Positions 2,476 through 15,507 of a stretch of DNA of 64,000 nt are shown here, piece after piece. How positions within the stretch are numbered: the stretch's first letter is position 1; each line of letters opens with the position of its first letter. A program made the translations under genes and the position numbers. The notes under the pieces were generated by a model. It worked only from the letters and a program-made list of their open reading frames with translations. It was not told the DNA's origin and did no database searches. The stretch comes from Octopus sinensis (Eukaryota). The DNA lies in assembly GCF_006345805.1 (NCBI RefSeq), contig NW_021824841.1:1255-65254 (forward strand), written 5' to 3'.

Positions 2476-2703
2476 ATGATTAGAGTAGGTTTGATCCTGT
2501 GTTGTATCTTCATTGTTGGAGTGTTTGAAGCCAGTTCTGCTGATGACATACTTACAGCACATAATTTGATTAAAAGATCTGAAGTTAAACCTCCTTCATC
2601 CTCAGAATTCATAGGCTTAATGGGACGTTCTGAAGAGTTGACACGACGATTAATTCAACATCCTGGTTCTATGTCTGAAACAAGAGAGGTCCACCGAAAA
2701 AAG
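2476..2703 (+). CDS. OctTK-I: Salivary tachykinin (OctTK-I peptide) precursor, main coding exon, copy 1
   Basis: ATG 2476 gives MIRVGLILCCIFIVGVFEASS (signal peptide), ADDILTAHNLIKR (propeptide, KR), SEV, KPPSSSEFIGLM (2587-2622, FxGLM motif), then G-R amidation/cleavage. Donor AAG|GTAAAA at 2703/2704. The peptide matches the known Octopus vulgaris salivary OctTK-I. Confidence 0.95.
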
Positions 2704-2761
2704 GTAAAATTTTAAATTACTATTATTAGTTTTACTGTTTACAATTAATTTCTTTGATACA

Positions 2762-2856
2762 GGCGCAGGAGTGTCTTGCTTACCAACCACATGGTTCAAT
2801 GTTCATTCCCACTGCGTGGCACCTTGGGCAAAGTGTATTCTACTATAACCTCGGGC
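2762..2856 (+). mobile_element. tRNA-derived octopus SINE (family 1), 5' part
   Basis: ggcgcaggagt...ggttca...cccactgcgtggcaccttgggcaa, as in the fuller copies at 24.3 and 46.2 kb. Mirrored at about 33910-34003. Confidence 0.8.
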
Positions 2857-2880
2857 TATATATATATATATATATATCTC

Positions 2881-4925
2881 GTTATATTTCGGAATGGTCA
2901 TTTTGCCAGTTTAGCCAATAAAATCACACGCACTATATATTTAGTGTTACTTTGCTTCAGTGTTATTTATTTTTTACATTAATCTTCATCTTATTTCGGC
3001 CAGAGTTCTTTCGTCACACTCCTGTGACCGCATCAGTGGTCCTTTGTTTTCTTCTTTCTTATTTGTGTCTCTCCTTACTAACCGTCAGCCATTTTGTATT
3101 TCTATTGTATGTCTTCATTTGCGCATGCTTATATCTCTATGTGCGTCTATGTTTATTTAGTGTGTGTGTGGGTGGGATGCTTGTACTATTTGTATCTTCT
3201 GTTTATATACGTTCATGTAGTTTGTTTTTGTTGTTGTTTTTGTTTATTCTTATTTTGTTCAAGTGTTTACATCCCTTTATTATTATCATTACATATGCTT
3301 GTATGTATGTATAACAACAATACTAGTTATAATAATAATAAATTTTATAAAATATAGTTTTTTTATTTCTATTTGTTTATTTATCTGTGTATTCATTATG
3401 TTTTCGGGATCCTCTAACGTCATATGTTGTGGTGTGTGCTATTGTTCCATTCTAGTTTTCTATTCAGGCTAGGTTTATTTTCTATTATGTGTGTAGCCTC
3501 TGTAATTTGCCTGATTGTTGCATCTGTTCTATGTGTGGACAATATTTTAATTTCTATGTTGTTGATTGATCCCCCGTGTTCCTGTTCGGCGTATTGGTAC
3601 AGAATCGATGAGCTTTTACCTTTCTTGAGTTGTCTCCAATATACATTTACCCGCTCTCCTATGCTTCTTGTCGTTTTCCCTACGTATTGCGTTGTCTTGT
3701 TACTGCATCGTCCCTCTATACATCTTATACTATAGACTACGTTTCTGGCTTTACAGTTTGTGGGCTAAATCTACATACAGTACAGTACTTATCAGTATAG
3801 GGGGTTCTACTAAAAGGATAGGTTCTACCAATTATAGATTTGATAGGGTTGCCTGGCTTTTCAACAACCTTAATCCTTAGCTTAAGTTTGTGTAGGGTCC
3901 TTCTAAAGCGGTACACCAGTTCACCTCCAGGGGTGGTGTCAACGAACATGACACTCTGGTATTTATGGCTATCATACCAAGATTTGGCCTTCCCTATTTT
4001 CTTTTTGTCCTTTCTATAGTGTTCCATGACTTGTTCCTATAGAGTGGGCAAATCCCATTCCTATCATTACATAATATATTATCAAATTTCTTCATGGCTC
4101 CTTTGTATACTCTGATCCTTTCTTTATGGCTGTAACCTGAGAACTGCATGCGGTGAATTGTATGTGTCTCTTTAACTCTGTAGGCTCGCACATGCGTGAC
4201 ACATTTCTCATTATTCTGACGAGGTCTGCCATCAAAATATTGAATTTGGCATTGTCCGCAATGGCTGAGTTCCGGTGGATCAAGTATTTTGAGGCCATAG
4301 GTTTGGCATAGTATGAATGAAAGATTTGGGTTTTATTATTCACAATTTCTAGCCAGAGTTCAGTGTCTAGTACTGATAGTCTATGGTTGGGTTGTTTAGT
4401 GGGTTAGTCTATTGTGACCTTAATACTCTGGTGGATGGAGTTAGCTATTTGCTGGATGCTCGCCATAGTATTAGTTTCTATTACTATATCAACAGTTCTC
4501 TCTTGTGTGGGTGCCTTTACCACTATGTTGATATCATCAACATAGCGAGAGTACATGTTTACGAGTATGGAGTTCTGTGTTAGGTGTTCTTTAAGCCTTC
4601 TATCACCAGCGATACTAACGCCTATGGCTGCCCCCTCGTTCTGGGCATATATTTTATTGTTAACCTTAAACGTGTGGCCTTTTATGGTAACTCTTATACT
4701 AGCTGCTAGTGCATGTGCGATCATTTTCTTTACCTGATGGACATTTGCGGGGCTCCGTATGGCTCTGGTCCATCCGCGCCATCTTTCTATATGGGTCTTC
4801 CTAGCCATAGAAGTAATTGTGGGCGGTCTACCTCTTAAACATCTACTGAAGCGAAGTAACACCAAATATATAGTGCGTGTGATTTTATTGGCTAAACTGG
4901 CAAAATGACCATTCCGAAATATAAC
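2881..4925 (-). mobile_element. Penelope-like retroelement (RT 3' half and GIY-YIG endonuclease) in the tachykinin intron
   Basis: QNEGAAIG and RYVDDINI RT motifs, VVYSIRC...TYVGETARS GIY-YIG motif, and 80-bp inverted termini at 2881-2960 and 4846-4925. Confidence 0.88.
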
Positions 4926-4984
4926 AATATCTGTTTCAACACACGACTTCACATAAAAAAATCTTGCACAACAAATATATAAAC

Positions 4985-4994
<10 letters not shown>

Positions 4995-5018
<24 letters not shown>

Positions 5019-13125: not shown

Positions 13126-13163
13126 TATAAAAGTGAGATGAAACAGACAACAACAAGTCATTT
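13126..13163 (+). promoter_or_regulatory. TATA and Inr of precursor B1
   Basis: Tandem TATAAAA boxes, the second at 13126-13133, and TCATTT with its A at 13160. There is no polypyrimidine tract upstream, so this looks like a first exon. Confidence 0.55.
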
Positions 13164-13182
13164 CTCCATCGAAATGTTTAAC

Positions 13183-13623
13183 ATGAGCAGAATTGTTTGT
13201 TTGATTTAAGCAGTCCTCCTGGTTAAATTTCTGGAAAGTGGTGGTGATGCGTTCTCTCTAGAAAAACGAAATGACAGTGTTCGGAGTTATAACGATACTC
13301 CGCATGCCGGTGTTGTGAGTTATAACGATACTCCGCATGCCGGTGTTGTGGATGATATTCAGAATATCGGTACTCCGCATGACGGTGTTGTAAGTTATAA
13401 CGATACTCTGCATGCCGGTGTTGTGGATGATATTCAGAATATCGGTACTCCGCATGACGGTGTTGTGAGTTATAACGATACTCCGCATGTTGGTGTTGTG
13501 AATAATATTCAGAATAACGCAGCAGCAGCTGCTAATTCACTAAACAAATGTATTATCCAATATAGAATGAGACTTTGCAAGAATGGACGTGGTTGTCGAA
13601 AACCAAAGAAATATGGAAAATAG
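13183..13623 (+). pseudogene. Repeat-containing secreted peptide precursor B1 with a nonsense codon in the signal peptide
   Basis: ATG AGC AGA ATT GTT TGT TTG ATT TAA: codon 9 (13207-13209) is TAA where copies B2 and C have TAT. The frame then continues AVLLVKFLESGGDAFSLEKR, repeats, NSLNKCIIQYRMRLCKNGRGCRKPKKYGK* to 13623. Donor ccag|gtaacg at 13669. Confidence 0.85.
13285..13500 (+). repeat. Coding minisatellite of B1: 33-bp and 42-bp units (11,11,14,11,14,11 codons)
   Basis: Units agttataacgatactccgcatgccggtgttgtg and gatgatattcagaatatcggtactccgcatgacggtgttgt(a/g). Confidence 0.9.
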
Positions 13624-14239
13624 CGTTTGATGGAAAAGAGTTCATGAGCGTTCTGAAAATCTTTACCAGGTAACGTATCCAATGAAACGTATTATGACTT
13701 TATGTTTTAATTTGAAGATTAGATTCAAAGCTGATATAAATAAGTACACAGAGATTCTTGAATTGTCTTTCTAATAATTTTTTATCTGTATTTTACATAA
13801 ATGCAGACTACTGTAGAATGTTTTCATCGATTTCTGAATTAAATATATCATTCAACAAATTCAGAAAATAATAACCCAAGAGTGTTTTGTTAAGTGTATG
13901 CATTTTTAAATTTGGTTCTTTAGTTATAAAGATCACTTTGGAAAACCTATTAGGAACCAATATTACTGTAAGTAAATATTCTTCCAAGAAATTAGAACCT
14001 CATACACTTTCTTCGAAACGCAGATTTTATAACAGCATTTTTGCTATTTTAAATTTATCTTAGATTTTCTGAGAAATGCTGTATTAGAATCAAAGATATA
14101 TTTGTTAATCCTTATGAGGCTGCCGATGAACGCTGAACAATTCTTCTCATTACATCGGCAACGATGTATGTCATGTGAAGAGCGTTTCTTATGGAAAGAT
14201 ATCTTCGCCTGTCTTGTAATGATATATTTACTCTAAAAA

Positions 14240-14800
14240 AAAACTACATTTCAAAAGCGTTTCATGTAGGTGTTTCTTCAGATGTAGAATCCGCAATTCT
14301 GAGACGTAATTTGCAATTAGGGGAATAAGGTCGTTGTACAGTCGAGCACTGAGTCGCTGGTGGGTATCCTGTAGGTTTTAGATCCCGTTTCATAACTTCC
14401 CAATCATTTAAGGCGATGGTTACAATCCGTCCTTTTAGATCTGCTTATCCATTTGGTATTATACTGTCGAGAAACCTAAACTGGTCTACTTTAGAAGCCG
14501 CCAGTGGGACAATGTCATTGCTCCATGACAGGATCTGGCACTTCAAGGCGTTTGTATCTGTGCCTCATGTTTAACGGCTTCGTGGATATACTGAATTTGT
14601 CATAGCAACAACAGTGGATACATGGGTCGTGTCATCCAGATACCTAATACTTTTGGAGAGTGCATGAGTGAATAAGAAACTTTTTCATGTGACTTTTCGT
14701 TCTCTCGGAGTACAAACATTATTATCGAATATCGCTTCTTTTATTTGCACTTGATTGGGATCCACGGTTATTACTTACATCATCTTCTATAGCGCTTTTC
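14240..14800 (-). mobile_element. Degenerate reverse-transcriptase fragment (Penelope-like) in the B intron
   Basis: SIRYLDDT in the mirror copy (about 30090-30118) and a downstream FLD. Heavily decayed. Confidence 0.35.
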
Positions 14801-15454
14801 TTTAGATGTTGTCGAATGCAGCATTAAAAACTATGAATTTAAAATACAATGACACCAGAAATTCTATTGCTTTCAAAATTTTTTTCCCGACTATACAACT
14901 ATGTCTCCACCGAAACTAAAATATGATTAAATCTCTCTCACCCTTTCCCATCACGGCGCTTCTTTTGGTTTTGCTTTTCATTCTGTCACCAGGTTTCCCG
15001 TTATTGACGAGAAAGAAATTAGCTTGTTTCGAACTTTTGCTTGTCGCCCCTGTTATATATCGGTGTTACCAACATAGGGATCTAATGTTTCGGCGTCCTT
15101 TCTGTCCCTCATATCATTTTAAACATTAACCACTATCTCTCTTCCTTCTTTTATTACTTCGGTTTATTATATAAAGAGTTCGGCGCCGGGCTGTGCTATA
15201 CACTACAATTGTGAACACGTTCACACAAATACACACACACACACACACACACGCACACACACGCGCGCACACACACAAATACTCACTCACACAAATACAC
15301 ATACACACACAAATACACATACACAAGCACACACAATTACACAAATACACACATACACACATAAACACAAACAGGTCTAAAGAAAGTTGGGACGGTTGTG
15401 AGGGAGAGGAAAACATACAAAATCTTATTGCTCTTGTTTTTTTTTCTTTTTCAG

Positions 15455-15507
15455 GCGATTTTAATCCCAATGAACTGAAACCTGAATCTAACATTTGTTA
15501 AAATAAA
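15455..15507 (+). other. Common terminal exon, copy 1 (GDFNPNELKPESNIC* in phase 1) with poly(A) signal
   Basis: Strong acceptor tttttttttctttttcag| at 15454, TAA at 15499-15501, AATAAA at 15502-15507. The peptide matches my recollection of the OctTK-II precursor C-terminus. Confidence 0.8.

Follow-up and report, generated by a model that had tools for sequence, protein, structure and literature searches.

The locus studied here raises the question of how octopus DNA encodes two tachykinin (TK) precursors with different C-terminal tails: OctTK-I (P0006, Q8I6S3, 87 amino acids), which ends in KK-VSRRPYILKK, and OctTK-II (P0001, Q8I6S2, 92 amino acids), which ends in KK-GDFNPNELKPESNIC. Both precursors were reportedly described by Kanda et al. 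in 2003. The DNA is a 64,000-nucleotide (nt) stretch of Octopus sinensis contig NW_021824841.1 (hereafter, the window), which is part of the octopus SF1 venom-peptide cluster and holds two facing, convergent TK transcription units and a third, degenerate one. The left unit, or arm, runs from TK exon 1 through a 52-nt exon and an exon for an unrelated secreted protein (B1) to a short last exon; the right unit runs from TK exon 1 through B2 to its own last exon (Table 1). A preliminary description of this DNA had listed these exons (2476-2703 and 5579-5630, B donors at 13669 and 31080, last exons at 15455 and 29315) and their order in both arms, and had given the two C-termini. The exons are all present, they follow one another by position as described, and the tails given match Q8I6S3 and Q8I6S2, an exact database identity far beyond chance. 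The description had further proposed that TK and B promoters feed one constant last exon, a wording that finds no support, as each unit has its own copy (15455, 29315 and 58371).

Loci orthologous to both arms can be compared in two reference genomes. Over 12.7 kb, the left arm shares 99.4% identity with O. sinensis GCA_006345805.1 (locus L002), and its identity to O. vulgaris GCA_951406725.2 (locus L003) is 98.4%. When reversed, the right arm aligns collinearly with another O. vulgaris locus, L006, at 98.1-98.7% identity. The convergent arrangement is kept in O. vulgaris, with its two loci about 17.5 kb apart, as in the window. A protein search with the TK exon-1 product (76 amino acids) led to OctTK-II, and a cluster look-up added OctTK-I; the product is 99% and 96% identical to the Q8I6S2/Q8I6S3-type precursors over 91% of the length.

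We computed exon joins in the intact orthologous loci at canonical GT-AG sites and compared them with the published proteins. In O. vulgaris L006, exon 1 (10001-10232) joined to the last exon (from 15440) reproduces P0001 in 92/92 residues. In two O. sinensis copies (L001 and L002), exon 1 joined to the 52-nt exon gives P0006 exactly, and at a further locus (L007) exon 1 with its own 52-nt exon gives P0002. An intact B2 in the same orientation (ATG 13163, donor motif 13678) lies between exon 1 and the last exon of L006, so the OctTK-II mRNA, whose precursor this join reproduces, is spliced across B2. Judged by these exact joins, the II-type tail is TK exon 1 spliced over B straight to the short last exon, and the I-type tail is the product of the 52-nt exon. 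The earlier proposal that TK is spliced to the last exon with B nested in its intron is thus borne out for TK-II, and L006 presents a distal first exon (TK) spliced over a proximal one (B) to a common acceptor. The TK-II pre-mRNA does not end between B2 and the last exon, since the published cDNA reaches the latter. On this comparison, sharing of the last exon is demonstrated for one transcript type only, TK-II.

The two tails also separate by gene. P0001 has the exon 1 found in the right-arm-type gene, P0006 the one found in the left-arm-type gene, and the two differ at diagnostic positions. Because these exon-1 substitutions are gene-specific and map to different genes, the match indicates that the published tails are products of two paralogous genes, not of one gene spliced two ways. 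The arms align at both ends (1-4615 pairs with 36764-32139, and 12964-15596 with 31812-29174), leaving an 8.3-kb segment that is confined to the left unit and contains the 52-nt exon. The right-arm-type gene is without this exon both in the window and in O. vulgaris (L006). Parts of the segment recur in two other paralogous units, window 5387-9195 downstream of the 52-nt exon of a fourth TK gene and window 11893-13223 upstream of the B3 exon in unit 3; the right-type (TK-II) gene therefore lost the segment by deletion, and with the loss of the 52-nt exon the published tails fall to two paralogous genes. Inclusion, skipping or deletion of this exon had been put forward as the switch between tails; deletion stands, through the 8.3-kb loss in the TK-II gene, but the published precursors are not isoforms. 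In Koch et al. (bioRxiv 2026, 10.64898/2026.02.02.703354), the RRPYIL tail, encoded here by the 52-nt exon, is named ‘octotensin’, a neurotensin mimic on the tachykinin precursor.

Table 1. Coordinates of the transcription units and associated elements in the window
Feature	Position	Strand	Remarks
TATAAAA box, left unit	2414..2420	+	starts 62 nt upstream of TK start codon
TK exon 1, left unit	2476..2703	+	signal peptide, KR, tachykinin mimic, GR, spacer; 228 nt, phase 0
Left-unit-only segment with 52-nt exon	4616..12963	+	8.3 kb; right unit has ~330 bp here
52-nt exon	5579..5630	+	phase-1 entry: VSRRPYILKK + stop; GT donor 22 nt past stop
75-nt exon, O. vulgaris model P0005 only	12333..12407	+	P0005 fuses TK exon 1 to B1; predicted
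B1 promoter boxes	13116, 13126	+	twin TATAAAA
B1 exon	13174..13669	+	ATG 13174; nonsense codon 13207-13209 in signal peptide; ORF (open reading frame) stop 13621-13623; donor after 13669
B1 tandem repeats	13289-13516	+	75-nt repeats, 3 copies in window
Last exon, left unit	15455..15507	+	phase-1 entry: (G)DFNPNELKPESNIC + stop; AATAAA 15502-15507 overlaps stop
Last exon, right unit	29263..29315	-	coding part identical to left copy; AATAAA 29268-29263
B2 exon	31080..31602	-	intact 166-amino-acid ORF; ATG 31602, stop ending 31102; donor follows 31080
B2 promoter boxes	31660, 31650	-	twin TATAAAA
TK exon 1, right unit	34062..34289	-	OctTK-II gene counterpart; identical to left copy including 4-nt shortfall
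TATAAAA twin, right unit	34351	-	counterpart of left TK box
Degenerate third TK-like exon	41557..41730	+	no start codon (short interspersed element, SINE, abuts 5′ end); in-frame stop
B3 exon, third unit	57157..57510	+	B1/B2-like signal and pro-region, different mature part; same donor motif
Last exon, third unit	58371..58423	+	phase-1 entry: (G)YFNINGLKPVANIC + stop; AATAAA at 58418

The last exons are compact and strongly marked. Those of the left and right units sit behind a long pyrimidine tract, and the last exon has the strongest acceptor in the region. Each contributes 15 codons in phase 1 and carries a stop that overlaps AATAAA (3/3 units); the 3′ end of the left unit probably lies about 20 nt beyond 15507. 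In unit 3, the acceptor and the 3′ untranslated region (UTR)/poly(A) region are better conserved than the 48 coding bases (10/48 differ), and the AATAAA of its last exon is the first AATAAA/ATTAAA signal after B3. The donors that could lead to these acceptors are good consensus matches: the 52-nt exon is flanked by the acceptor ...ttcttacag/ and the donor TTTCAG/gtattg (slashes mark exon boundaries), and the B1 and B2 exons both end in TACCAG/gtaacg, a motif kept in 3/3 B copies and three genomes. With the frame intact, the distance from stop to donor is 22-46 nt, being 22 nt for the 52-nt exon, 46 nt for B1 and 22 nt for B2. All three distances fall below about 50 nt, the range in which a stop codon ahead of a 3′-UTR intron spares an mRNA from nonsense-mediated decay. 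The preliminary description had found no recognisable terminal exon between the 52-nt exon and 15455, which is correct for II-type exons and AATAAA, but in this interval the O. vulgaris annotation has further exons, 12333-12407 and the B1 body (model P0005). Directly upstream of all three last exons lies a (CA)n-rich microsatellite (15220-15375, 29400-29530 and 57740-58290), which is greatly expanded in unit 3, filling most of the interval from B3 to the last exon.

The nested B exons have the parts of secreted-protein genes. The B2 product comprises a signal peptide, a KR site, 12-residue repeats and a basic tail with four Cys residues, and TATAAAA twins start 48-58 nt upstream of the ATG in 3/3 B exons. 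B2 is 99% identical to the B part of O. vulgaris model P0010, with no other credible match in the 5.8 billion or 1.84 billion sequences searched. The B family has no Pfam match, and the full HMMER scan returned only P0010 and weak matches to the repeat region, which are regarded as compositional. The nonsense codon of B1 is found in O. sinensis too, and the repeat ORF behind it stays open. From ATG to donor, B1 measures 488 nt in the window and 788 nt in O. sinensis (L002 from 20709). The idea that B and the TK exon are paralogous variable exons was dropped, as they share no BLASTP similarity.

We consider that the architecture of the units and the use of the last exon are best explained as follows, at a probability of about 0.6. 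Each unit starts with a putative TATA promoter, followed by a 5′ exon that codes for a signal peptide together with the tachykinin mimic. Next comes a long intron, with the unrelated orphan secreted-protein exon B inside it in the same orientation, bringing its own TATA boxes, ATG, signal peptide and stop and, 22-46 nt further on, a consensus donor. The unit closes with a short 3′ exon that has a very strong acceptor and a stop overlapping AATAAA. The 52-nt exon would be an internal cassette whose donor probably joins this same 3′ exon, leaving it to serve that transcript only as 3′ UTR and poly(A) site. Should the B promoter fire, B transcripts would probably also be spliced from the B donor to the same last exon, a route proposed because they run through DNA that the TK-II pre-mRNA traverses.

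Several observations weigh against this explanation. Ten predicted products (TK-I exon 1 with the II-type tail, unspliced readings, products of the window's own frame, and B2) were sought by exact protein look-up and 0 were found; in the protein collection there was neither a TK-I-exon-1 protein with the II-type tail nor B as a separate protein. Look-ups of P0001, P0006, P0005, P0010, P0002 and P0004 returned the two reference genomes only, or nothing, and no Logan transcript contigs; Logan contigs in the P0003 cluster were discarded as splicing evidence, being short genomic pieces of another species. Conservation around the B donor and the donor of the 52-nt exon is no higher than in the flanking intron, which, being equally conserved among paralogs, makes it uninformative on donor use. 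B1 is disrupted, as is B3 in the window, and the B promoter is putative. The fourth TK gene (L007/L008) has the same 52-nt exon with its GT and is without B or a II-type last exon on its strand over the roughly 11.6 kb checked in L008, which extend to the last exon of unit 3 on the opposite strand, and the O. sinensis copy L001 has no II-type last exon within the sequence covered. The O. vulgaris annotation, finally, fuses TK exon 1 to B in two models, P0005 (339 amino acids) and P0010 (222 amino acids).

Two other accounts of the 52-nt exon draw on part of this evidence. One gene could make both tails by including or skipping it, and skipping in intact left-type genes would put the II-type tail in frame. 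However, P0001 corresponds exactly to the TK-II gene and P0006 exactly to the TK-I genes, with diagnostic exon-1 differences; the 52-nt exon is missing from the TK-II gene, and no record was found of the product that skipping would give, so that we consider alternative inclusion in a single gene distinctly improbable. The exon could instead be the start of the true last exon of the octotensin genes, with read-through past 5630, polyadenylation nearby and an unused GT at 5631, the exon at 15455 being a relic or serving B1 only. In favour of this are the missing II-type last exon downstream in L007/L008, and in L001 as far as covered, the lack of any recorded protein joining TK-I exon 1 to the II-type tail, and an ATTAAA at 5870, within a SINE. 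This ATTAAA is, however, the first after 5630: no AATAAA or ATTAAA lies within 260 nt of the stop or for 260 nt after the exon, and the SINE stretch is missing from L007. The donor TTTCAG/gtattg is usable, and a new intronic exon needs just splice sites, not a new poly(A) site. Moreover, the O. vulgaris model gives the fourth gene another downstream last exon with AATAAA, so the 52-nt exon may be internal in that gene too. We regard a terminal 52-nt exon as unlikely.

The B exons likewise admit readings other than a shared last exon. B could have a 3′ end to itself, either as an independent gene nested in the intron or as a family of pseudogenes in decay, the GT after its stop being fortuitous and the last exon being used by TK alone. 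The nonsense codon in the B1 signal peptide (in the window and O. sinensis), the frameshift of B3 in the window, the lack of B relatives outside the two O. vulgaris fusion models and ATTAAA motifs 169 nt past the B donors (13838 and 30911) all speak for such decay or independence. B2, however, has stayed intact, with 99% identity between the window and O. vulgaris, and O. vulgaris also has an intact B3; the TK-II pre-mRNA is not terminated at these ATTAAA motifs; in unit 3, no poly(A) signal comes between B3 and that of the last exon; and TACCAG/gtaacg is kept in the three B copies and three genomes. A separate 3′ end for B therefore seems doubtful to us. The fusion models suggest in turn that TK exon 1 might be spliced into B, giving TK-B fusion precursors with B as an alternative 3′ coding exon, and the nonsense change in B1 creates the AG that P0005 uses as acceptor, the B1 ORF being open beyond it. 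Yet P0005 and P0010 differ in their acceptors, and P0010 and P0004 take a cryptic donor inside exon 1, as prediction that maximises the frame typically does. B comes with TATA boxes, an ATG and a signal peptide of its own, it is absent from the published OctTK-II cDNA, and O. sinensis RefSeq predicts no such fusion among the proteins found. With their cryptic donor (P0010) and differing acceptors, the two fusion models look like frame-maximising prediction, and we consider true fusion precursors very improbable.

The window's own copies of TK exon 1 are a special case. Both contain what is expected of OctTK/SF1 genes, a signal peptide and a KR-flanked ...F(I/V)GLM-G-R mimic, and both end in the donor AAAAAG/gtaaaa. 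According to Koch et al. (10.64898/2026.02.02.703354), the ORF of SF1 genes is divided between two exons, of which the second contributes 10-20 residues. An in-frame, phase-1 continuation into such a second exon fails in the window and is exact in the orthologous loci. The window copies are 4 nt shorter (after 2681) than 5/5 intact copies from O. sinensis and O. vulgaris: they measure 228 nt and finish in phase 0, whereas the intact copies (n = 5) measure 232 nt and finish in phase 1. Because of this shortfall, neither tail is directly in frame in the window, and the ‘KK’ before the donor is read in another frame there. The claim that the tails lie on separate phase-1 exons thus holds for the tails, which appear on phase-1 entry, but not for the exon 1 that the window supplies. 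In the window's own frame, exon 1 joined to the last exon reads ...HRKK and 7 further residues before a stop; with the 52-nt exon included, which is open throughout when entered in phase 0, its 17 codons are read without a stop and the last exon is entered in phase 1. The RRPYIL motif encoded at 5579-5608 is identical to that of P0006, but exon 1 as it stands in the window does not lead into it in frame. The frameshift falls downstream of the tachykinin and its processing sites, and on this reading the tachykinin could still be made from the window copies.

The shortfall falls within a tract in which the two arms are nearly identical, from 1 to about 3171 (pairing with 36764-33590, minus strand), with 2 differences in the first 2856 bp; beyond it, identity is about 96%. 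This tract spans the promoter, exon 1 and the start of intron 1, and is a mosaic of states diagnostic for the O. vulgaris TK-I and TK-II genes. Both the mosaic and the near-identity of the arms fit either gene conversion or polishing of collapsed repeats. General assembly indel errors are not supported as the cause of the 4-nt shortfall: across 12 kb the window has just some 9 private indels, and several of these fall in microsatellites. The shortfall itself may be a genuine allele or may stem from the assembly.

The third unit and the fourth TK gene extend the array. In the degenerate third TK-like exon, the peptide region has diverged from the FxGLM motif. B3 carries a frameshift in the window but has an intact ORF of 91 amino acids in O. 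vulgaris (L008 25856, minus strand); its conserved signal and variable payload would fit an unannotated venom-type precursor family. The fourth TK gene (O. sinensis XP_029654246, with the octotensin tail) lies just past the right edge and points into the window, which its downstream flank enters at 64000 (window 60253-64000; L007 and L008). The O. vulgaris model of this gene, P0004, has its last exon in a dispersed repeat, with AATAAA, and a changed basic site before the tachykinin.

Elsewhere, further stretches of the window are up to 99.8% identical to O. sinensis. Transposon remains occur in three places. The G+C-rich centre between the arms (51% GC) holds a reverse-transcriptase fragment (19977-21999). 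An antisense ORF in intron 1 of the right arm (32563-33339) gives a weak GIY-YIG match, and one near the right edge (60259-60921) a weak match to a transposase helix-turn-helix. On O. sinensis CM016860.1 (136.94-136.98 Mb), L001 and L002 are two head-to-head TK-I copies with a palindromic spacer. One of them stops short of B1 and continues with sequence matching window 25573-28141, unlike the window and O. vulgaris, a structure that reflects either structural variation or misassembly.

Taken together, the locus provides a genomic account of how one venom precursor gained two unrelated hormone mimics. The neurotensin mimic has its own 52-nt exon within the intron of an older two-exon gene and was lost by the sister gene, and the analysis draws attention to B, an orphan secreted protein that lacks annotation and is nested within the genes of the toxins. 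Sharing of the 3′ exon by B, if it occurs, would be an unusual co-packaging of venom components. The O. vulgaris TK-B fusion models and the frameshifted copies in this assembly need checking at the RNA level before use.

The genes themselves are already known; what is new is structural, namely the nesting of B, the placing of the octotensin exon as a cassette and the deletion of that exon. Compared with OctTK-I/II and the SF1 doppelganger-toxin superfamily, the locus has the same exon 1 (96-99% identity over 91% of the length), the RRPYIL motif, the two-exon ORF and the local arrays; beyond what has been published, it adds the nested B, a 52-nt exon upstream of an ancestral-type last exon and the deletion of that exon in the TK-II gene, and the window copies are frameshifted after the tachykinin. 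In the literature searched, these toxins were nowhere described as having alternative splicing, exons in the 3′ UTR or nested genes, and the accessible text of Koch et al. (10.64898/2026.02.02.703354) makes no mention of splicing alternatives, nested genes, UTR exons or pseudogenes.

A broader parallel is offered by the clustered protocadherins and UGT1A, in which, as here, 5′ exons with their own promoter motif and a donor, and no acceptor, lie upstream of one acceptor-bearing 3′ exon, and a distal first exon (here TK) skips a proximal one (here B). We tentatively suggest that each unit could be a miniature variable-first-exon locus: two unrelated toxin first exons with their own promoters would share one short 3′ exon, which would be a coding tail for one first exon and only 3′ UTR and poly(A) site for the others, and octotensin-like payloads would arise as small cassette exons within the shared intron. 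In contrast to the protocadherins and UGT1A, there are two first exons per unit, unrelated in sequence; the ‘constant’ exon has 15 codons and a poly(A) signal and would be non-coding for B, whose use of it is putative; and the whole unit has been duplicated, rather than one constant region being shared. The octotensin exon resembles the use of cassette or alternative 3′ exons in vertebrate TAC1 (preprotachykinin A) and CALCA, in that a tachykinin precursor gains a second bioactive peptide through one small additional exon, although here its presence or absence is fixed between paralogs by deletion. SF1 genes are unrelated to vertebrate tachykinin genes, according to Koch et al. (10.64898/2026.02.02.703354). 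CDKN2A-type loci are similar in that a single downstream exon is proposed to be joined to two first exons with separate promoters, but the ORF of B ends before the junction, so the shared exon would not be read in a second frame.

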